64,000 nucleotides of DNA from Guillardia theta CCMP2712 (Eukaryota; Protista; Cryptophyta). The stretch covers positions 46,107 through 110,106 of the forward strand of contig NW_005434638.1 in the NCBI RefSeq assembly GCF_000315625.1. The letters are read 5' to 3'. The notes beneath the pieces were generated by a model. It worked only from the letters and a program-made list of their open reading frames with translations. It ran no database searches and was not told the DNA's origin. The translations under genes were made by a program, and so were the position numbers. Of the stretch, positions 12,185-60,429 are shown one piece after another. Position 1 is the first letter of the stretch. Each line of letters opens with the position of its first letter.

Positions 12185-15100
12185 AAGGAGTAGGAGCAGC
12201 ACCTCTTTGGTGGTGGTGACCAGCTCGTGGTAAATGACCATCTCCGGGTTCTTGTTGAAAAGGGCGGAGGAGGGATGGANNNNNNNNNNNNNNNNNNNNN
12301 NNNNNNNNNNNNNNNNNNNNNNNNNNNNNNNNNNNNNNNNNNNNNNNNNNNNNNNNNNNNNNNNNNNNNNNNNNNNNNNGCTCACCGTCATGGTTGTCAT
12401 CGTGCACACGAGCAGAGACACGAGAAAACGAGTGGAGGAGTGGGGAAGGGGAAGGGGGAAGGGGGAGGAGGAGGAGGAGGAGGAGGAAAGGATACCTCCT
12501 GCGGATCCTTCTTGGCTGCATGATGGAAGAAGCCGCTGACGATGGCTTTACGGACTTTGTTCCAGTTCTTGCCAGCGCTGACGATGTCGAGCTTGTGACG
12601 ATCCATGATCTGCAGGATCTGCTTGCGCACGTCCTGAGCTCGACGAAGGGAGCGAGCGTGCAGGAAGTTTTCGTAGCACCAGGGGTTACTGAACTTGTTT
12701 CTCTTCCAGGCCTCGTAGACATTGAGTAGCATCAGGTGATCTCCTTCCGGGCAGTAGAACTTGGACTTCTTCTGGTCTGCCTCCGCCGCCTTGTCCTTGG
12801 GGCGGTAGAAGAGCGTCTCCACCGAGAGCATGGCGACAATGGTCAGGATCTCCTCGGCGCAGGAGAGGTCGACGGCTGCGAGGAGGATCTGCAGGGGGGG
12901 CGAGTGAGTTGCAAGAGGAAAGAAAAGCACTAACGGTCACCTTGGACAGCGTTGGATCCAGGGGAAACTCCGCCATCCTCCTTCCAAGGCGGGTCAGCAG
13001 CCCTTCCTCGTCTAAGGCTCCAAGGGCGTATAGAGTCTCCATAGCGTGGACGAGGGTCTGGATAGGAGGAGGATCCATGAAGTCGAAGTGTATGATGTCG
13101 TTAATACCCATTGCCTGTCAAACTGATCAAACCCCGCCGCAAGATTGAGAAAGCAGGGCGAAATGCAAGACAGCCATCAGGGACTCGCGGGAGGGGGAGG
13201 GGAAAACTCAAAAACAGTCAAGAGGAGGGTCAGAAGCAACACAGAGAGGACTGTGCGAGCAGCAAGCAAGGGAGAGCCGATAGTCAGAGCAAGGAGTCGA
13301 AGGGTTACCTTGAGCTGTAGGACGGTATTGCCGAGGTTGGCTCGCTGGATCTCAGGGACAGACATCGGCATCATCTCTGACTTGAACGCGTTCTCAGTGT
13401 AGAGACGGTAGCACTTTCCCGGCCCCGTCCTGCCTGCTCGCCCTGCCCTCTGCTTTGCCGAGGCCTGTGAGATGGGGGCGACGACGAGGGCGTCGACTCC
13501 AGTCTTGGGGTTGAAGACTTTCTGCTTGGCGAAGCCGGGATCAACAACGTAGAAGATGCCGTCTATGGTGAGAGAGGCCTCGGCGATGTTGGTGGCAACG
13601 ATGACCTTGCGCTCTCCGATGGGGGTGGGATCGAAGATTCTTGTCTGCATCTCACTGGGGAGCGTCGAGTAGACGGGGAAGATGTTGAGCTTGGGGGCGA
13701 GCTTTCCCAGGGACTTCATGCGCTCGAAGAGAATTTGGCAGGCCGTGTCAATCTCCTCCTGACCCGTGAGGAAGAGCAGAATGTCACCTGGAGGTTCTGC
13801 AAGGTGAATTTGCATGACAGTGATAAGGGCAGCGTCAAGGTAGTCAGACTCGGGGGCCTTGGTGTACAGGACCTCGACGGGGAAGGTTCGACCAGGGACC
13901 GTGAAGACGGGGCACTTATTGAAGTACTCGGAGTACTTCTCGGCCTCCATGGTGGCTGACGTGACGATGAGCTTGAGCGACGGCCTCTTCATCGCAGCCT
14001 TTTTCATTAAAGAGAAGAGCACGTCGGTATGAATCGTCCGTTCGTGCGCCTCGTCCAGCATAATCACGCTGTAGCCCGACACCTCCGTATCGATCAAGCA
14101 CTCACGGAGGAGCATACCGTCTGTCATGTACTTGATCACGGTCTCAGGGGACGTGCAATCTTCGAAACGGATGGTGTAGCCGACCTCCTGGCCCAACCTG
14201 CACCCGAACTCCTCGGCCACGCGCTTGGAGACTGACATGGCTGCAACACGACGAGGCTGTGTGATGCCAATCTTCCCCCTGGTGGTATAACCAGCTTCTG
14301 CCAGATATTGCGGCATCTGTGTCGTCTTTCCTGACCCGGTCTCTCCAATGACAATCAGGATCTGGTGGTCCTTCATTGACTGCAAGAACGCATCGCGGAA
14401 GTGGAAGATGGGAAGTGACTCCCGCTGCTGCTTGATCGTCTGGTTGGTCTGCCTGTACCCCGTTGACGTTCCTCCTCCTCCCATCGTCTGCGATCTCCAC
14501 TCCTCAATCTCTGGAGGAGCAGCACCAATACCTGCCAACTCCTGGGAAAGCATTCGTTCTCCCGGGGCTGCGAGAGGGTCAGCCCAGGTCCTCCCGAGAT
14601 CTTTTGGAGCTGACTCCATGAGCGCTCGCTGCTGCTGCTCACGAAGCTCTCTCCTCTCCTTAGCGAGGGCTGACTGCGTCAAGGCAGCTCTCTGAAGGGA
14701 ACCATCAGGGTTCTTGACGACCTTGATTGGGGAGAGGTTCAGACTCATCCTCGTTTGCCCCTTCAAGAACTCTGGCTCGTCATCGTTCAACTCAATCTCG
14801 AGCTCTTCCCCTTCCTCCTCCTTCCCATGCGCCAGCAGCCCCGTCTCTTCATCGTACGTCGGGTACTCCTCCACGCTGAGCACGCCGGAAGCAATCAGCT
14901 GTTGCGCCTCCCACAGATCCGGGGACGCCAGCCTCTTGGTCACCCTCCTCGGGCCAGCATCGCGGTCCTCAGCGTGAATGGGTACACCAGACACGTTCTC
15001 TTCGATCGGCTTGGAAGGATTGGACCTCTGGTTCTGCGTCATGGAGGTCATCGGAGCGAGATCTCGCCCAGTGGTTTGATCGACGTCCCTCATGGTCAGC

Positions 15101-23129: not shown

Positions 23130-25178
23130 TTAGAAGGGCGGGAAATGCGCTTTATACCAGACGAAGATCTTGCGCTGCAGCGGTTCGACGATGGCAAGGA
23201 AGAAGGAGAAGGAAGGATTGGCGTGCTGCATTAAATGTCAATGTATGATGCTACGAAAGACCATGACGATGATGAGGGTGTTGTCGTCCTTGTTTGATGA
23301 TTACGATGACGACGAGGATGTTGGCTGTGGTTGTGGTTATGATATTGGTTGATGATGATGATCATGATGATGATGATGATGATATAGTTGTGGTTGTGGT
23401 TGATGTTGTTGTTGAACATGATGATGTACTGTTGGTAGTGATGGTGTTACCGAGGGGAAGAGCTCGAAGTCTGCGTCGACTTTTGTGATCTGCAGGATAG
23501 TCATACAACGGAGGAGGAGGGGAAAGACAACAAGATAGGGGATGGAAGTCACTTGCAGCTTGTGCGTCTGACTCTTCGAAACTTTTACCTTCCATGTTGT
23601 CAGGCAAGAAGTCGAAAGATAAATCTCCTCCTCCTCCTCCTCCTCCTCCTCCTCCTCCTCCTCCTCCTCCTCCTCCTCCTCCTCCTCCTCCTTGTGTTGC
23701 AGCTCTCCACTTCCTCATTCCCTCTGCCCCCCGTCCTCGTCCTTCCCGTACTTGCTCTATCCTACCCTCCGCCCGTCTCTCCTACCAGATCTTTGTACAT
23801 GTCCTTGGTAACATCCATGTACGCGTCAATGCTGTCTTCGAACTGACACGTTCCTCCTCCAACCACTAGTGCCTTGAAGATATGGAAGATCAGCTCCTTC
23901 CTCTCTTCTTCTGAGAACTCCTGCGAACGCTTCTCAACCCTGTACGAGAGGACGACGAAGAGGAAGACGAGGACAAGGGGAAGGAGGATCAACCTCGTAG
24001 TGGTCACTCTCTTCCTGTACCAGCAGCTTGTGTAGCTCGTCGGAGAGAACAAGGTCGTCGACAAACTCGTCGAAACATTTCACAAGAGCTCCGTTCTCCC
24101 GCACAACAGGAGGGTCCTCTGTGCAAGAAGAAGTCACGAAAGATCTGATAGCATCAGCTAGCACTACTAAACTATGAGAGCACTGAAAAAATCAAAAACT
24201 CATGCTCCCTTCCTCCCGCCCTGCCACCTCCTCACCTTCACAGCTCTTTCTTCCCTCTCATCTCCTTCTTCCTTCGCTCGTCTCCTCTCCTCTCCCCTCC
24301 CCTCGTCTCCCCTCCCCTCCCCTCGTCTCCCCTCCCCTCCCCTCCCCTCCCCTCCCCTCGGTCTCTCACCAATCTGCATCAGCTTGTCAAAGAACTCCAT
24401 GTTGGTCACACTGCTGGCCAGCTCCTCCACCTCGACCCTCCTGACCGGCCCAACTCTTCTCCACGAGTCTCTGCCGGAGGAAACGCTGAGAGAGCTTTGC
24501 ACCTTCACACGAGATGTGATGAGTTGACAGGACAGGACAGGACAGGAAAGAGGACAGGACAGGACAGGACAGGACAGGACAGAGGACAGGACAGGACAGA
24601 GGACAGAGGACAGGACAGGACAGAGGACAGGACAGAGGACAGGACAGGACAAAAAGTTGGTGTTTTTCTACCGTCTTTGAAGCAAAAAAATCTCTGAAGA
24701 AGACTTGAGACTGGTGCTTGGAGAAGAACTCGTCGAAGCTGAAGGCTCGCAGGTACGAACAGTCCTCAAACCCCCACTTGGTCCAGAGCTCCTGCAATGC
24801 CTGTTGACTGAAGGGAGGGAGGGAGGGAGGGAGGGATGGGGTGGGGAGGGAGGGAGGGAGAGAGAGAGAGATAGAGAGATAGAGAGATAGAGAGATAGAG
24901 AGATCGANNNNNNNNNNNNNNNNNNNNNNNNNNNNNNNNNNNNNNNNNNNNNNNNNNNNNNNNNNNNNNNNNNNNNNNNNNNNNNNNNNNNNNNNNNNNN
25001 NNNNNNNAGTCAAGGGAGATAGGGTGGAGAGGGAGAGAGGGGAGGGAGGGAGGAGGTAAGGACTGCTAACCTTCTTCTTCGGATCGTTGAGGATTTGAGG
25101 CTTGAAATCCACCTCCTCAAACTGGAAACTCCCTGAAGTCTCTTCCTCCACCTGATCGCTGGAGATGTGCATGGCCAT
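23130..25178 (-). CDS. CFAP300: Cilia/flagella dynein-arm assembly factor CFAP300 (C11orf70), multi-exon
   Basis: LWTKWG...AFSFDEFF...FFRDFF; MEFFDKL; VVRENGALVKCFDEF...SDELHKLL; FSEEERKELIFHIFKALVVGGGTCQFEDSIDAYMDVTKDMYKDLV; final exon ...IVEPLQRKIFVWYKAHFPPF*. Confidence 0.85.
24527..24650. repeat. (GGACA)n/(GGACAGA)n microsatellite in a CFAP300 intron
   Basis: Directly visible. Confidence 0.95.
24908..25007. other. Assembly gap (100 N)
   Basis: N run. Confidence 1.
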
Positions 25179-40565: not shown

Positions 40566-40665
40566 NNNNNNNNNNNNNNNNNNNNNNNNNNNNNNNNNNN
40601 NNNNNNNNNNNNNNNNNNNNNNNNNNNNNNNNNNNNNNNNNNNNNNNNNNNNNNNNNNNNNNNNN
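40566..40665. other. Assembly gap (100 N)
   Basis: N run. Confidence 1.
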
Positions 40666-54245: not shown

Positions 54246-55997
54246 ATGGCTGGCAGAGCGGTAGTCGGGGCGATGGCGATAGCGGTCTTGTTGGGCGCGG
54301 CGCTCATGCTCAGCAAGTTCGAGGAGGGAGGAAGACAGGTGCAACAAGAGTTTGAGTTTCAATCATCGTCCTTTTCCTGTTCCGCAACCAATCTTTGTGG
54401 ATGAACCCATGTTGCATATGCTTTCCTTATGGATTCAGTTGTGTAGTGATTTCTCGGATGATTCTTGTTCTTCCTCCAACGTGTGCTAACACAAGAGAGC
54501 ATTGTCTACCTCATATTTTACCTCAACTTGCTTTACGTGTAATCTTACCTTGCTCGAAATGACTTCTTCAAAGGGTGATGCGGGAAGAGTTGTACTCAAA
54601 CAGGACGCGTCAGTCAGGTTGCTTCTTATGCTTTTGCCTCCGTTTCGATGCATCTCACAAACCTTGCTCGGCAGGAGATGGATGAACACCCTCAAGGGCG
54701 CAGAATCGTTTCTTTCTGATGCAGAAAAGGGGAAGCTGCCAGCAAAGGCGATTGTGCCAGGGGAGTTCGACTCAGTTGAGAACCTCTTGAAGAGGACAAA
54801 GGAGCAGGTTCAAGAACAACTGTGCTCTTGACATGAGTGATCTCAACATGTCGCTGCAGGTGCATAGAGAGGCCACTAGGCTGCATGCCCTGGATGCACC
54901 CGAGAAACCGCCAACTCCGTAAGTCTCACCTTATGAACCATGTGGGCTCGCAGCGTATGCTGCTGGAGTATACACACAGAAAGATGCATATTCCTCTCAT
55001 CTCTTCCTCTCATCTCGTTCATCCTCACTTGCGCGTGCTAGGATCGGTGCCAAGAAGCTCGAGCTGCTGACTGGACCTGGAGAGCAGAATGCTGAGGAGG
55101 GCTTCCAGGGTACGGCGAGGAGGGATGCGCGACCTGGACAGGTAGATGTTGTTGGAGATCGCGCCCCGTGCAAGATCCGCATGCTGGCTGATGGACGTGA
55201 GCTGATGTCTGCCTCCTCAGGTCGTCCGTGAAGTGACCGACATGGTTGATCAGTACAAGGCGGAGGAGGACGAGGCTGCCAAGGTAAGTGGGGAGGGCGC
55301 TGTTGAGTTCCCAAGATCATTCGGGGATTGGCAGGAGCTTCTCCGCACGATCGCTTCCAAGATCGTCGAGGCGTTCGACAACCACGGGCTGTCCGCAGCT
55401 CAAATCGCTAGGGAGCTTACGGATTCGGATTCGGGCTCGGACGAGGGGGGCGAGTCGTCGGGTACCATGGCTGAGCGGCAGATCATGCCCCAAAAGGGGC
55501 AGATGCTGACAAGCGGGGTAACGTCGGACACCATCCTGGGCCGAGAGACGCCAGACGTCGGCGTTGCTGACTGCACTGACCTGCCGGGACTGCCCAAGTC
55601 GTCCAAGTTCTGCCTGGAAGGGCGACCATGGTCGAAGCTTCCCGGGATGAACTCGGCGATGACCTCCGGAGACATGCGGGCCAAGATCAAGGAGCTGAAG
55701 GAGCAGGCGAGACGGAACATGGGGCTCCCCAACGCGAACAAGGTGGACCAGGAGGAGCTGTCGAAGCTCCAGGACATCGTGAAGAGCACAAAGAAGGCGC
55801 TCAACGAGCAGGAGAGCAAGCTCAAGGAGATTCGAGATGAGAAGCACAAGGCTTTGCAGGATCTTGACGAGCAGAAGAAAGTGATTACCATGGCGAAAGA
55901 CGCCAGGAAACAGCGCCTGGCGTGGAGGGCCATGGACGATGGGATGACCAGGGCGTACAAGGAAGCAGGATTTAAGTTGCCGCTCTCAGGTGATTGA
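54246..55997 (+). CDS. Multi-exon protein with N-terminal signal/anchor and C-terminal coiled coil
   Basis: MAGRAVVGAMAIAVLLGAALMLSK first exon; terminal ORF 55233-55997 with heptad-rich end. Confidence 0.5.
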
Positions 55998-56234: not shown

Positions 56235-58800
56235 TCATAGTGAGAGGCTCGGTCGTGCTAGCAGCTCGACTTTACCTTGTGCCTCAAGGCAGACAGAAAG
56301 ATTCTTTACGCTGGTCAGCGTGTCCGGGTGGCTCTCCCCCAGCTTCACCCGCCTCTTCTCCGCGCACTCTCTGAACAGCTCCTCCGCCTCCTCGTACTTC
56401 CCCTCGTTGAAGCAGAGGGACCCCAAGTTGCTCATGCTCGTCAGGGTGTCGGGGTGATCCTCTCCCAGCTTGACTCGCCGCAGCTGCAGACACTGGCGGT
56501 AGAGAGGCTCCGCATCCTCGTACTTGCGCTGCATCTTGTACAGGCCTGCAAGGTTGCTCATGCTGGTGAGGGTGTCAGGATGGTCAGCTCCGAGCTTGCT
56601 GAGGAAGAGTTGGAAGCACTCGACGTACAGGCCCTCGGCCTCCTCGTACTTGCCCTGGCTCTTGTACACCCCCGCAAGGTTGCTCATGCTCGTGGGAGTA
56701 CCTGGGTGATCGATCCCCAGCTTCTCCCGCCTTCTCTCAAGGCAGAGGACGTACAAGGGCTCCGCCAACTCGTACTTGCCCTGACTGTAGTAGAGGCCCG
56801 CAAGGTTGTTGAGGCTCGTCAGGGTGTCGGGGTGATCCTCTCCCAGCTGACTTCGAAGTCTCTCCACGCAGAGGAGGAAGAGTGGCTCTGCCTGCTCGTA
56901 CTTGCGCTGCATCTTGTAGAGCCCTGCCAAGTTGCTCATGCTGGTGAGGGTGTCAGGATGGTCCTCTCCCAAGCTCGCCCGCCGCTTCTCCAGACACTCC
57001 AGCCAAAGAGCCTCTGCCTCCTCGCTCCTCCCTTGGCTCCTGCACAGGGCCGCCAAGTTGTTGACGCTGGTCAGCGTGTCCGGGTGGCTCTCCCCCAGCT
57101 TCACCCGCCTCTTCTCCGCGCACTCTCTGAACAGCTCCTCCGCCTCCTCGTACTTCCCCTCGTTGAAGCAGAGGGACCCCAAGTTGCTCATGCTCGTCAG
57201 GGTGTCGGGGTGATCCTCTCCCAGCTTGACTCGCCGCAGCTGCAGACACTGGCGGTAGAGAGGCTCCGCATCCTCGTATCGCCCCTGATGGAAGTAGAGG
57301 CCTGCAAGGTTGCTCATGCTGGTGAGGGTGTCAGGATGGTCAGCTCCTTGCCTGTCCTTGACCTTGCCGATGCAGTCCAGGTACAGGCCCTCGGCCTCCT
57401 CGTACTTGCCCTGGCTCTTGTACACCCCCGCAAGGTTGCTCATGCTCGTCAGGGCCTCCGGGTGATCCGCCCCGAGGCAACTTTGCAACTTGGCAAGACA
57501 CTGGGTGTACAGGAGCTCTGCCTGCTGATACCTCCCCTGGCTCTTGTAGAGCCCCGCCAGGTTGCTCATACCGGACACCGTGCCGAGGTGATCAGCTCCA
57601 AGATTTCTCCGCTGCCTCTCCAGACACTCGACGTAGAGAGGCTCCGCCAGCTCGTACTTGCCCTGACTGCAGTAGAGGCTAGCAAGCTTCATCCTGCCCC
57701 ACAAGTCGTCGTCCTCGTCTTGATGGCTGACAAGTGCCTGGCGCTCAGCAGCGGCAGTGAACCAATCGCGCATGGAGGAGAGGACGAGAGCGTTGAGATG
57801 ATCAAACCCTCCAGCTTCTCTGATCACCGCGAAGATCCTCTCCTTGTCTTCCCTCTTGAACGCCTCGCTGTTCTCCACATCCACCTGCCCGAGCATCCCC
57901 AGGTAGGTATCGATCGACAGCTCGGACCAGAACTTCTTCGCCTCCGTCTCGCTCATGGCGACGCTGAACCGGCTGCGCGTCCTTGCCGTCTGGAACAGCT
58001 CAAACAGGCACCAAGCTCGAGTCAGAGGGATAGGGTTGTTCCAAGGGGAAAGGATCATTACAGTATGCCCGAAATCCCTAATCGCCTCCGCAAACGTCGT
58101 GCTCCACCACTCGAACGGCAAGTTCGGGGCCCCGTGCTGGTTGTTGCTGAAGAGGTCGAACCAGATGACGGTGCTGCTGCCCTTGAAGTGAGACTCTATC
58201 GCGCTCACGACATCAAGGAAGTTGTACTTCCAGGCATGCGAGATAAACACCTGCGCCCTGCTCACCCCCGCATGCCCCTCCATCTGCAGCAGCTGGCAGT
58301 AGGAGACCCCTCCGTGTGCTGCGGTGAACTTCATGAGGTACTTCTCGCACACGTCAGTCGTGGTGAGGCCTGACAGAGCTGCTTGCCCCCCACACTTCTC
58401 CACGAACTCCCTGAAGACTTCCAGCGTCACTCCTTCCTTGGGGAACGGCAGAGACCCTGAAGGAGGAAGGGAGGTTAGCTTGCTAGGTCTACTCAAGGAG
58501 GCGTGCCTTGATCTTTGCTCGCAGTTGCGTCTGCCGATGCCCCGGCAGTTTTCGTCTCTGCTCTGCTTGGCACGTCGATCTCTGCAGTGAACCACCAAAC
58601 AGTCACTCAGCAGTGGTAACTCCTTCGCAGCCTCGACCAGCACCTGCTGAACGGCCAGCCCGGAGCGTGGGAGGAGCGGAGGCTGGTCCCGAAGGAGCAG
58701 TAAGGTGGGGCGAGGTCTTCATGGGCTCGGACGCTTCCCTCCTTAGGCTGAGGTCCTCTGCTAGTGGGGATGTTGGGGTAGACGAAACACATCCTCCCAT
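56235..58800 (-). CDS. HET/TIR-like domain plus 11.5 KLC-type 42-aa TPR repeats, N-terminal MGGC acylation motif
   Basis: VFISHAW, IWFDLFSNNQH and LTRAWCLFEL; repeats HPDTLTSMSNLAxLYxxQGKYEEAE. Introns 58643-58582 (GT-AG) and 58506-58457 (GC-AG) link MGGCVSS in frame. Confidence 0.9.
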
Positions 58801-59110
58801 CGATCATGCAGTGACGTGCTCGGGCTTTTATCCTGCTCCTCTCCTCTCCTCGCTCCTCTCCTCTTCCGTCCTCCTCTTCCGTCCTCCTCTCCTCTCCTCT
58901 CCCCCCTCCCCTCTCCAGTCCCTCACAGATTCCCGATTCTGGAGCCAACGGCCCTAGAAAAATGTCACAGGTATCAACATTACATTTTATACCCTTTATA
59001 CAATTTTACACGCCTGTTTGATTTTGATTATCCGATTTTGAAGGACCCCTACCCCCATCTTTGGTATCGCTGTAGAGGGGAAGATTTGATGTCGAAGGAG
59101 GAAGCGACAG

Positions 59111-59174
59111 CTCTGAACGACATCTGATCTAACTCTGAACGACATCTGATCTAACTCTGAACGACATCTGATCT
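59111..59174. repeat. 22-nt tandem repeat CTCTGAACGACATCTGATCTAA x3
   Basis: Directly visible. Confidence 0.95.
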
Positions 59175-59257: not shown

Positions 59258-60429
59258 ATGTGTCAAACTGTTCAGAGAACTTCAAAGATGATGCTGGAAG
59301 GTGAGGATTGCAGACATGGAGACGATGAAGCTAATCTTTGGGTTTGTAAAGGCCTTGTCCAAGACATCACGCGTTGTCAGGGAAGTTGCAGGAGGTTCAG
59401 CGAAGAGAGGCTTGTTTAATACGGCAACTTGCTGAGTTGCAGGAGAAAAATCAAGTCTTGACGTCAAGGTTGGAAGCAACGTCCTCTACGTTGCGGAGGG
59501 CATTGGAAGAACGAGACGAAGCGCTGGTTCAGAAGAGGAAGGAGGTGTTTTGCAGGCAGCAGCTTGAGAAGCAAATGCAAGATCTCATAGTCAACAAGAA
59601 CCCGGTCAAGGAAGAAACAAAAGGCACACACGAGCAAGACAAGACGAGTCAGAAAGACTTCAAAGTGTTGGAGGCTCTGAACTCCATGGCAAGGTCCCTT
59701 CAAGGCTTTCAAAGTATCCTTGCAGACGCGCTAGTTCAGGGGGGTAGCACGCCCCCCAACTCCCAGGAGATGCAAGACAGGCTATCAGAACCATGTTCAA
59801 CCATGGAGAACTCCTTGCTGCAACTTTGCAGACATCTGCATGTCTCGGAGGAAGAGAGTGAAGATAAGAGTCCCAAGACAGGCAAGAACAAGCAGATGAC
59901 AGTGAGGTCAAGAAATCCCTCAGATGAACGTCCTCTTTCCTTGCATCAGCCACCTGACGCTGCTCGCCATGGAGCCCAATCCCAGTCATTGCACACGATA
60001 GGGACGCAGACCCAGGACTTCAGTGAGGATACAGATGTCTGTAACGGGGGAGGAGGAGCCCCGAACAGACCGCAGGGACGGGCTATGTTGTCTGCTGCTG
60101 TGAGTTGGAAACTTGGGATACCGCCCCTTGTGCTGATATCTTCAACCACGCAGAGGAGGAGGCAACAGGACAAGCTGACACAGACCAAGTCAGTCGAGAG
60201 TTCTAGTGATACAAGCTCCTCCTCCTCCTCGGAAGGTCTCCGTGGACACGTCAGGACTGCCGCATCCCTGCTGCCGATCTCTGACTATGACTTCCGCCAG
60301 GTGCACGACGTTCTGAAACAGAAGCCGGAGATCTTGAGGAGCAGGACCTTATCCAGGGCACCTGACCCGAAGTCTAAAGCTGTTCCCACGACATGCCCAG
60401 CTGCCAAAGAGCTGCCGCGAACAAAGTAG
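59258..60429 (+). CDS. Hypothetical coiled-coil protein (may continue by splicing to about 60825)
   Basis: 351-aa ORF with N-terminal heptads; phase-compatible upstream exon ending GAAG|gtgag. Confidence 0.5.

Follow-up and report, generated by a model that had tools for sequence, protein, structure and literature searches.

A putative TIR-like domain fused directly to TPRs in Guillardia theta and a large family of protist proteins

Introduction

In bacteria, plants and animals alike, TIR domains play a central part in immunity and cell death, and very little is known of the defences of protists and algae against viruses and parasites. An ORF of Guillardia theta CCMP2712, located within a 64-kb window (the whole stretch of DNA analysed, 64,000 nucleotides of contig NW_005434638.1, positions 46,107 to 110,106 of the forward strand), raises the question of whether a TIR-related effector has been joined to a repeat sensor in this lineage, and what such a protein would do. 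The original prediction, made from the DNA alone, described the product as a candidate algal immune receptor in which a TIR/HET-like domain is fused directly to TPRs. Here we describe the gene, its predicted product and the family to which it belongs, and weigh the explanations that may account for them.

Gene structure and domain organization

The main ORF occupies positions 56235-58643 of the minus strand (802 codons) and encodes a 250-residue N-terminal domain (ORF residues 63-312; hereafter the N-domain) that adjoins the first of a series of TPRs directly. Three short motifs, VFISHAW (58230-58250), WFD (58155-58163) and TRAWCLFEL (57996-58022), all on the minus strand, are present where the original prediction had placed them. 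Its further claim, of a direct fusion between effector domain and TPRs lacking any NACHT or NB-ARC domain, is borne out by Pfam: the best 25 of 34 Pfam matches of the ORF protein and the first 25 of the 43 Pfam families listed for 65 relatives include no P-loop NTPase family, and precomputed Pfam annotation of 120 full-length relatives shows neither NACHT nor NB-ARC. Because the N-domain runs directly into the first TPR, the protein also has no space for an NTPase domain.

Position 58800, the outer end coordinate of the original prediction, is the ATG of a short upstream ORF that begins MGGCVSS and is read in a frame different from that of the main ORF, so that only an intron could connect the two; in the main frame, no ATG occurs 5' of a conserved FPKEGV block. 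As read from the sequence, a predicted exon 1 of 52 codons plus one nucleotide (58644-58800, minus strand), with an inferred boundary, would be followed by a sense intron of 187 nt (58457-58643, minus strand). This is the best candidate from reading by eye and enumeration of GT..AG pairs: it has the donor CAG/GTGCTG, an acceptor composed of a pyrimidine tract and then CAG, and a length of 1 mod 3, as required to pass from the frame of the ATG to the main frame. Its coordinates are provisional, because many other GT..AG pairs also preserve the frame, and no splice joint for any of these pairs was found in any read or contig, the raw RNA run giving almost no cover. An assembly frameshift was considered in place of an intron; a DNA contig from run X1, which is possibly the assembly's own data, agrees with the window over 57420-58870.

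With its exon junction as predicted, the MGGCVSS start fits the consensus for N-myristoylation (Gly2, Ser6). Modification of Gly2 is predicted on this basis, and Cys4 could provide a site for palmitoylation. Similar starts occur in about a third of those relatives that begin with Met, since 76 of 238 begin MG and 70 of 238 fit MGxxx[STAGCN]. The gene product would then comprise a predicted N-terminal lipid anchor, the 250-residue TIR-like module and eleven TPRs, and is probably anchored at a membrane.

The 5' part of the gene is overlapped by a spliced antisense transcript. Joints in contigs of run X2 define a plus-strand region (58338-59043) containing three GT..AG introns, at 58338-58416, 58474-58524 and 58971-59043, with splice dinucleotides examined on each strand; if the first of these (79 nt) were assigned to the sense mRNA, conserved codons would be lost and the frame shifted. 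Splice junctions in the contig runs were on the plus (antisense) strand only, accompanied by a repeat-collapse joint of 378 nt, and sense-strand expression was not seen in these contigs or in the scant raw RNA reads. Antisense transcription, the N-myristoylation start and the 65-residue helical cap described below went unmentioned in the original prediction.

The TPR array

From about residue 313 to its C-terminus the protein consists of eleven TPR units of the kinesin-light-chain/NPHP3 type, each of 42 residues or 126 nt (56238-57707, minus strand), identified by Pfam, Tandem Repeats Finder and a repeat search and followed directly by the stop codon (56235-56237, minus strand). An array of TPRs beyond the N-domain had been expected from the DNA alone; the 11.5 units then counted become eleven. 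Pfam matches include TPR_10 (E 4e-135, in 11 stretches), TPR_12 (E 2.4e-134) and TPR_NPHP3 (E 1.3e-65), and a profile of the family matches KLC1/2 in PDB at E about 1e-48.

At the DNA level the eleven units lie in exact 126-nt register, and segments distant from each other are nearly identical. Two 221-nt segments six units apart (56302-56522 and 57058-57278) are 99% identical, and identity between 56617-56689 and 57373-57445 is 96%. These near-identical segments represent repeat turnover. The units differ from one another chiefly at unit positions 17-21 and 29-41.

The kinesin-light-chain type of these repeats is among the features that would suit a quite different reading of the protein, as a non-catalytic membrane scaffold or adaptor, in which the TIR-like domain would act in assembly only (compare MyD88 and TIRAP) while the TPRs bind cargo or partners, in trafficking or at a flagellar or ciliary membrane. 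A myristoylated start that is predicted as a family trait would fit equally well. Nephrocystin-3 (NPHP3) has the same type of TPR, and the vertebrate protein combines it with an N-myristoylated start; NPHP3 differs in that its start is separated from its TPRs by a coiled coil and a P-loop NTPase region, the Guillardia protein having no NTPase.

Structure and conservation of the N-domain

The N-domain is divisible into two parts. Its first 65 residues (ORF residues 63-128; 58260-58457, minus strand) are delineated by alignment A5 and AlphaFold as a family-specific helical cap, in which FPKxGV, CGG, LTTTDVC, KPxT and SYC are conserved. Folded alone, the cap is modelled by AlphaFold as four helices (pLDDT 92.8), for which no fold match was found in PDB (Foldseek E 7.7; VIA-align Z <=2.5). 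The second part (ORF residues 128-305; 57729-58262, minus strand) is predicted, from AlphaFold, hhalign and structure searches, to form a TIR-like alpha/beta core of flavodoxin-like fold with C-terminal helices.

In a large protein family, conservation is highest at the three motifs noted above, and 65 diverse representatives all share F, H, W, R, W, C and E. VFISHAW represents the betaA strand; its F, H and A are invariant in alignment A2, with S and W at least 90% conserved, and its F, H and W are invariant in alignment A4. It aligns to VFISHAS of bacterial TIRs in hhalign and to IFISHAW of PDB 3h16. WFD opens the block IWFDLFSNNQH, corresponding to betaB and the following loop, which hhalign pairs with the VWYDEFS of TIRs, leaving a gap in the subsequent loop; the NNQH and WW residues after WFD are specific to this protist family. 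TRAWCLFEL covers the end of betaC and the start of alphaC and contains Glu215 (codon 57999-58001) within W211-C-L-F-E215 (W-x-x-x-E). This residue is invariant in the 65 representatives, at least 90% conserved in 117 members, and aligned to the invariant Glu of a bona fide TIR alignment (A3); we take its position to be that of the TIR catalytic Glu at the start of alphaC. Because the NNQH...WW block replaces the BB-loop region, the active site may differ from those of known TIRs.

Relationship to the TIR superfamily

No Pfam family matched the 250-residue N-domain above threshold, and direct searches with it of Pfam, NCBIfam and PDB gave sub-threshold matches only, those from NCBIfam having the appearance of noise. 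TIR_2 matched the ORF protein at E 0.019-0.039 (15.9 bits, against a gathering cut-off of 28) and gave sub-threshold matches to 48 of the 117 family members scanned (best E 0.0012), SEFIR occurring in five of the 117; the curated score of a family in the Pfam TIR clan (STIR: TIR, TIR_2, SEFIR, ThsB_TIR) was reached by none of them. Sixteen PADLOC families were matched, including ThsB, bSEFIR and PycTIR in few members and PDC-S66 in 28. The sole or best sequence match in PDB was 3h16, deposited as "TIR protein"; a trimmed family alignment was used for this search, the untrimmed one being swamped by kinesin light chains. A language-model atlas, limited to named clusters, gave a score of 0.77 and no Pfam family.

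Profile-profile comparison by hhalign of A2 with A3, which consists of six bacterial TIRs (Pfam TIR_2 E about 1e-21) and one ThsB_TIR protein, gave a probability of 83.7% and an E-value of 8e-6 over 132 aligned columns. The betaA, betaB and betaC/alphaC blocks were matched in order, with Glu on Glu, and the value obtained with the real profiles (42.5) compares with 19 for reversed profiles and 9-17 for 20 column-shuffled profiles. Since the most conserved blocks of the family align in order to those of TIRs and the controls fall far lower, the likeness of the motifs goes beyond chance.

The AlphaFold model of the N-domain (pLDDT 93.5, pTM 0.90) pointed in the same direction. Its top Foldseek matches were TIRs, with probability up to 0.96 at an E-value of only 5e-3. 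In an unbiased VIA-align scan of 48,161 PDB chains, almost all of the top 27 were TIR, ThsB, SEFIR, DprA or nucleoside deoxyribosyltransferase. Over the structure searches as a whole, the best matches comprised the TIRs of SARM1 (Z 6.8-7.2), RPP1, RUN1, RPS4, MyD88, SpbK and ThsB, together with SEFIR and nucleoside deoxyribosyltransferases. The alignments spanned 111-138 residues (model residues 66-243) with rmsd 2.9-4.5 and Z 5-7.2, scores that VIA-align itself rates as middling and that possibly reflect merely a common arrangement.

The likeness might be convergent or artefactual, the N-domain being an unrelated Rossmann-like fold with short motifs shared by chance, in which case TIRs would offer no guide to its function. 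All direct HMM matches fall under curated thresholds, Foldseek gave no match at E <= 1e-3, Z remained <8, and the hhalign probability was 84% and not >95%. Nevertheless, Pfam, PADLOC, the PDB sequence search, profile-profile comparison with controls, Foldseek and the structural scan converge on the TIR superfamily, and independent methods yield the same three-motif register ending at the TIR Glu, so that we consider a spurious likeness very improbable. Profiles and the predicted fold together support assignment of the N-domain as a putative divergent member of the TIR superfamily. The TIR part of the original motif reading was sustained in this form, short of any Pfam TIR threshold, and its HET part was not. 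IWFDLFSNNQ and RAWCLFE resemble, we presume, blocks of HET domains; the HET model (PF06985) was not reported for the ORF protein and is missing from the 25 families that head a list of 66, compiled for the 117 members at E <= 10; those 25 include every family matched by two or more members.

The fold comparisons bear equally on whether the N-domain could be a housekeeping nucleotide or nucleoside enzyme, such as a nucleoside 2-deoxyribosyltransferase or a SLOG/LOG-like protein, which its TPRs and lipid anchor would localise only and which would have no role in conflict or cell death. Deoxyribosyltransferases equal TIRs in fold score (1f8x, Z 6.3; 6evs, Z 6.2-6.3), and high conservation of the N-domain would be in keeping with such an enzyme. 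Sequence profiles, on the other hand, favour TIR_2, SEFIR and ThsB; neither the first 25 of 66 Pfam families nor the 16 PADLOC families include a deoxyribosyltransferase or LOG family; the hhalign register is that of the three TIR blocks; and near-identical, shuffled TPR units and variable extra domains (see below) are unlike a fixed metabolic enzyme. We judge this explanation improbable.

Distribution of the family

A search with the domain retrieved at least 9,461 clusters, each with its representative, at 50% identity (E <= 1e-3). The architecture of domain followed by TPRs is recorded in oomycetes, haptophytes, green algae and diatoms, and the brown alga Ectocarpus provides a named match; an "algal" receptor, as first proposed, is therefore too narrow a description, the same architecture occurring in oomycetes. 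TPR_12 was present in 61 of 65 sampled relatives. Some members carry extra domains (PH, MIT, UQ_con, HNOB or methyltransferases), and tandem copies of the domain occur. Public annotation names members of the family only as "TPR repeat protein". No paralogue was found within the 64-kb window, and a scan of viral contigs yielded no relatives, so that nothing points to a viral origin or to viral decoys.

Across distant phyla the N-domain is 40-60% identical. Such strong conservation would be expected equally of the scaffold or adaptor introduced above, and the adaptor TIRs of MyD88, TIRAP and TRIF match the model at similar Z. Against a purely structural role, the invariant or nearly invariant residues (H, D, N, N, Q, H, R, E) are of a polar, catalytic type, including the Glu, which to our knowledge is generally absent from animal adaptor TIRs; moreover, 9,461 clusters and tandem domain copies would be unusual for a single structural function. 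A non-catalytic scaffold is in our assessment rather unlikely, with more in its favour than a housekeeping enzyme.

Comparison with known systems

The Guillardia domain has in common with bacterial TIR_2 domains (3h16 or DUF1883-TIR type) the FISHA of betaA, V/I-W-[FY]-D of betaB, and a hydrophobic betaC ending in SP and followed by W-x-x-x-E-L. It differs in its additional 65-residue helical cap, in the NNQH...WW that stands for the BB loop and in its extra C-terminal helices, and further in being sub-threshold in Pfam, eukaryotic and fused to TPRs. SARM1, whose TIR ranks with the best matches of the structure searches, offers a parallel in which a helical-repeat sensor controls a TIR domain without a STAND NTPase. 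Its arrangement (ARM-SAM-TIR) is distinct: the order is reversed, the TIR being C-terminal; SAM provides for oligomerisation; the repeats are ARM and not TPR; and the protein is targeted to mitochondria and not myristoylated.

An N-terminal TIR or TIR-like HET effector with a conserved Glu, together with TPRs at the C-terminus, is likewise found in plant TNP/XTNX proteins (TIR-NBARC-TPR) and in fungal NLRs of the HET-NBD-TPR/WD40 type (PMC9153377, PMC10197012, PMC4986451), and fungal NLRs also contain highly similar repeat units (PMC4986451). Both groups possess a central nucleotide-binding domain, whereas the Guillardia protein does not. In the bacterial anti-phage system BcTir/BcTpr, a TIR-type NAD+-processing module acts with a TPR protein; these are two genes of an operon, and NAD+ cleavage is assigned to the TPR protein (preprint 10.1101/2023.05.26.542521). 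The Guillardia protein, by comparison, is a single eukaryotic polypeptide with a predicted lipid anchor.

Discussion

The best explanation that we can offer, which in our estimate is about evenly balanced between right and wrong, is that the gene encodes a membrane-anchored, NTPase-free sensor-effector whose TIR-like domain would cleave a nucleotide. TIR NADases require the alphaC Glu, and those studied are active only through self-association (PMC9153377, PMC10197012). In the likeliest mechanism, the TPR solenoid might bind a peptide or protein ligand, or might restrain the enzyme domain; ligand binding, or clustering at the membrane, could then bring TIR-like domains together, and the composite active site so formed would cleave NAD(P)+ or a related nucleotide, leading to its depletion or to a signal. 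NAD+ cleavage, activation driven by oligomerisation, and any immune, antiviral, non-self or cell-death role are inferences. The N-domain is more conserved across phyla than typical fast-evolving immune effectors, an observation that counts against this explanation, as do the failure to find a paralogue in the 64-kb window or a relative in viral contigs, the sub-threshold Pfam matches and the middling fold scores.

More tentatively still, and as a possibility that we consider less likely than not, the family may constitute the main TIR-type class of innate-immune or cell-death receptors in microbial eukaryotes, represented in stramenopiles, haptophytes, green algae and Guillardia. Its members would be lipid-anchored and NTPase-free, with a sensor of shuffling TPRs and a TIR/HET-related, nucleotide-cleaving domain having its own NNQH/WW residues and cap. 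If such a class exists it would have been overlooked because public annotation gives all members the name "TPR repeat protein".

For annotation, many entries so named contain at their N-terminus a highly conserved domain that has gone unrecognised and merits a family model of its own. This domain might also help to connect the HET domains of fungi with TIRs. Should the proteins prove to be active enzymes, they would add to TIR biology a new receptor layout, in which a TIR-like domain, lipid anchor and TPR sensor occur together and a nucleotide-binding switch is missing, and would provide a testable way into the immunity of ecologically important plankton and oomycete pathogens.

Gene structure and predicted start

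The 802-codon minus-strand ORF at 56235..58643 encodes the motifs VFISHAW (58230-58250), WFD (58155-58163) and TRAWCLFEL (57996-58022), all on the same strand, followed by eleven 42-residue TPR units extending from residue ~313 to the end of the ORF. Its Pfam matches include TPR_10 (E 4e-135), TPR_12 (E 2.4e-134) and TPR_NPHP3 (E 1.3e-65); NACHT, NB-ARC and other P-loop families are absent from the matches listed (best 25 of 34), and the N-terminal domain (N-domain, residues 63-312) adjoins the first TPR directly. The original observation of these three motifs ahead of TPRs, with no intervening NACHT or NB-ARC, is thereby borne out. A non-catalytic scaffold in the style of NPHP3 or KLC is a rather unlikely alternative reading of the protein.

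No ATG lies in the main frame upstream of the conserved block FPKEGV. An ATG at 58800 starts a short ORF (MGGCVSS...) in a different frame, so that joining the two requires an intron of length 1 mod 3. Sequence reading and enumeration gave as best-looking candidate a 187-nt minus-strand intron whose donor (CAG/GTGCTG) lies at 58643 and whose acceptor, at 58457, follows a pyrimidine tract; further donor/acceptor pairs are also possible. A sense-strand junction was not found in the contig runs, and the one raw RNA run has almost no cover at the predicted exon junction. The predicted MGGCVSS start is independently supported by its relatives: 76 of 238 Met-starting family proteins begin MG, 70 of the 238 fit the N-myristoylation pattern MGxxx[STAGCN], and the consensus of 65 representatives likewise begins MG. 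Just upstream of the predicted ATG is a CT-rich microsatellite (58831-58922; units of 3-13 nt), over which the depth of the DNA run spikes; farther upstream, a 22-nt unit is repeated perfectly in tandem (2.9 copies; 59111-59174).

Resemblance to TIR domains

Direct HMM comparison of the protein with TIR_2 gave E 0.019-0.039, below threshold; among 117 aligned family members, Pfam TIR_2 matched 48 and SEFIR five, again sub-threshold. Judged by sequence, such matches are weak yet mutually consistent. The PADLOC models ThsB, bSEFIR and PycTIR match a few members, and 28 are matched by PDC-S66, a candidate defence gene. In PDB sequence searches the only or best match was 3h16, a chain deposited under the title 'TIR protein'; its E value was 0.29 for the single-sequence query and 0.01 when the family profile was used. 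An alignment of bona fide bacterial TIRs served for a stricter comparison: seeded from the 3h16 fragment, it was extended to plasmid-borne proteins annotated TIR or DUF1883, and a Pfam check of its members gave six with TIR_2 at E ~1e-21 and one with ThsB_TIR. Comparison of the family alignment with this TIR alignment by hhalign yielded a probability of 83.7% and E 8e-6 over 132 aligned columns, placing the family's VFISHAW on VFISHAS, IWFDLFS on VWYDEFS, TVMILSPW on GLVVLSPA and RAWCLFEL on KGWTNYEL; the last of these sets the family glutamate (Glu215) on the invariant glutamate of the TIR set. The real pair scored 42.5, against 19 for reversed profiles and 9-17 for twenty column-shuffled profiles, and a TIR resemblance arising by chance is considered very unlikely.

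IWFDLFSNNQ and RAWCLFE may resemble the second and third HET blocks, which we treat as a lead. Among the best 25 of 66 Pfam families for the 117 members, HET does not appear. Fungal HET domains are remotely similar to TIRs, including a functionally important glutamate (PMC9153377, PMC10197012, both citing PMC4986451).

AlphaFold2 with the family alignment produced a confident model of the N-domain (pLDDT 93.5, pTM 0.90). Foldseek against the PDB returned nothing at E <= 1e-3, its top rows being mostly TIRs (SNC1, RPP1, SPARTA, SARM1, AbTir; probability up to 0.96). VIA-align on that list gave SARM1 (rmsd 2.9 over 111 residues; list maximum Z 7.2) and RPP1 (Z 7.1, rmsd 4.5 over 138 residues), values that are middling by the tool's own warning. 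SARM1 also ranked first (Z 6.8) in an unbiased scan of 48,161 chains, where ranks 2-27 were almost all TIR, ThsB, SEFIR, DprA or nucleoside deoxyribosyltransferase, and unrelated GTPases appeared only under Z 4.7. What counts in this modelled evidence is the uniformity of the match list and its accord with the sequence register, rather than Z. We regard it as quite unlikely that the protein is a housekeeping nucleoside or nucleotide enzyme. Modelled alone, the first 65 residues of the N-domain form four helices (pLDDT 92.8), a cap that matched no known fold in Foldseek and VIA-align searches.

Distribution and architectures of the family

Residues 63-312, used as query in a word-based search, retrieved 169 proteins of 137-437 residues (E down to 8e-82), the N-domain lacking Pfam annotation and many carrying TPR_10 or TPR_12. 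Profile search of 1.84 billion representatives returned 9,461 proteins at E <= 1e-3, 5,675 at <= 1e-10 and 2,027 at <= 1e-30; by these sequence criteria the N-domain represents a large unannotated family. TPR_12 occurs in 61 of 65 sampled members and PH, MIT or UQ_con in a few, with no NTPase among the families listed (best 25 of 43). The relatives noted (P0121, P0130, P0199, P0223) include polypeptides with two or three N-domain copies, and others in which PH, MIT, ubiquitin-conjugating, HNOB, DUF285 or methyltransferase domains replace or join the TPRs. Full-length relatives, one of them from Ectocarpus fasciculatus, bear only such names as 'tetratricopeptide (TPR) repeat protein' or 'hypothetical protein'. 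Atlas clusters of the same fold (TM ~0.9) have records from Oomycota, Haptophyta and Chlorophyta and include fusions to DUF285, methyltransferases and HNOB; a sequence-feature search added Bacillariophyta. Many protists therefore share the architecture, which is not peculiar to this alga; 'algal', the first description of the candidate receptor, is too narrow, as the records from Oomycota show.

TIR-plus-repeat proteins are already known in SARM1, plant TNPs, fungal HET-NLRs and bacterial Tir/Tpr (10.1101/2023.05.26.542521). Uncharacterised TIR clades restricted to eukaryotes are mapped in a 2026 preprint, whose main text mentions neither TPRs, haptophytes nor cryptophytes (10.64898/2026.04.30.722052). 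Literature searches directed at TIR-TPR proteins in protists yielded no description of this family. With its own cap and loop, direct TPR fusion and predicted myristoylation, it appears to be a distinct branch of the TIR superfamily.

Repeat variation and overlapping transcripts

The eleven TPR units keep an exact 126-nt register, and variation between them is concentrated at unit positions 17-21 and 29-41. Segments 56302-56522 and 57058-57278, six units apart, are 99% identical, and 56617-56689 and 57373-57445 are 96% identical. One RNA-type contig lacks exactly three units (378 nt), and at 56549 and 57142 contigs of three runs (X1, DNA; X2, probably RNA; X4) pass from the array to other TPR-like sequence. 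Together these point to collapse, a copy-number difference, or a second locus with near-identical units; the departures themselves suggest a second locus or haplotype with such units. On the minus strand the departing sequence resembles a first-TPR junction and a divergent TPR unit.

Three plus-strand segments with GT..AG bounds, 58338-58416 (79 nt), 58474-58524 (51 nt) and 58971-59043 (73 nt), are missing from X2 contigs, which indicates that a spliced transcript runs antisense to the gene in its 5' part; the first is also present unspliced. The plus-strand ORF 59374-60429 may have this transcript as a long 5' UTR. At the other end, splicing appears to join a plus-strand coiled-coil ORF (55233-55997) to 56035, where seven raw RNA reads and a contig terminate; the contig's loose letters (...TACAAGGAAGCAGGATTTAAGTTGCCGCT) match the end of the ORF. 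The last exon or 3' UTR of this ORF reaches at least 56470, so that it and the minus-strand gene (stop codon 56235-56237) overlap at the latter's 3' end. Three runs of exactly 100 N (12280-12379, 24908-25007, 40566-40665) are assembly gaps, and the window is therefore scaffolded sequence.

Possible function

Because the N-domain is strongly conserved across phyla, we keep the claim of an immune role modest. Beyond the architecture, homology and conservation documented here, we infer activity, activation and biological role, giving about an even chance to a lipid-anchored sensor-effector with TIR-type, Glu-dependent nucleotide cleavage and no NTPase switch. Such a protein would sit at the membrane by its predicted lipid anchor, its TPRs would bind ligand or hold the enzyme domain in check, and clustering would switch on the nucleotide-cleaving site.
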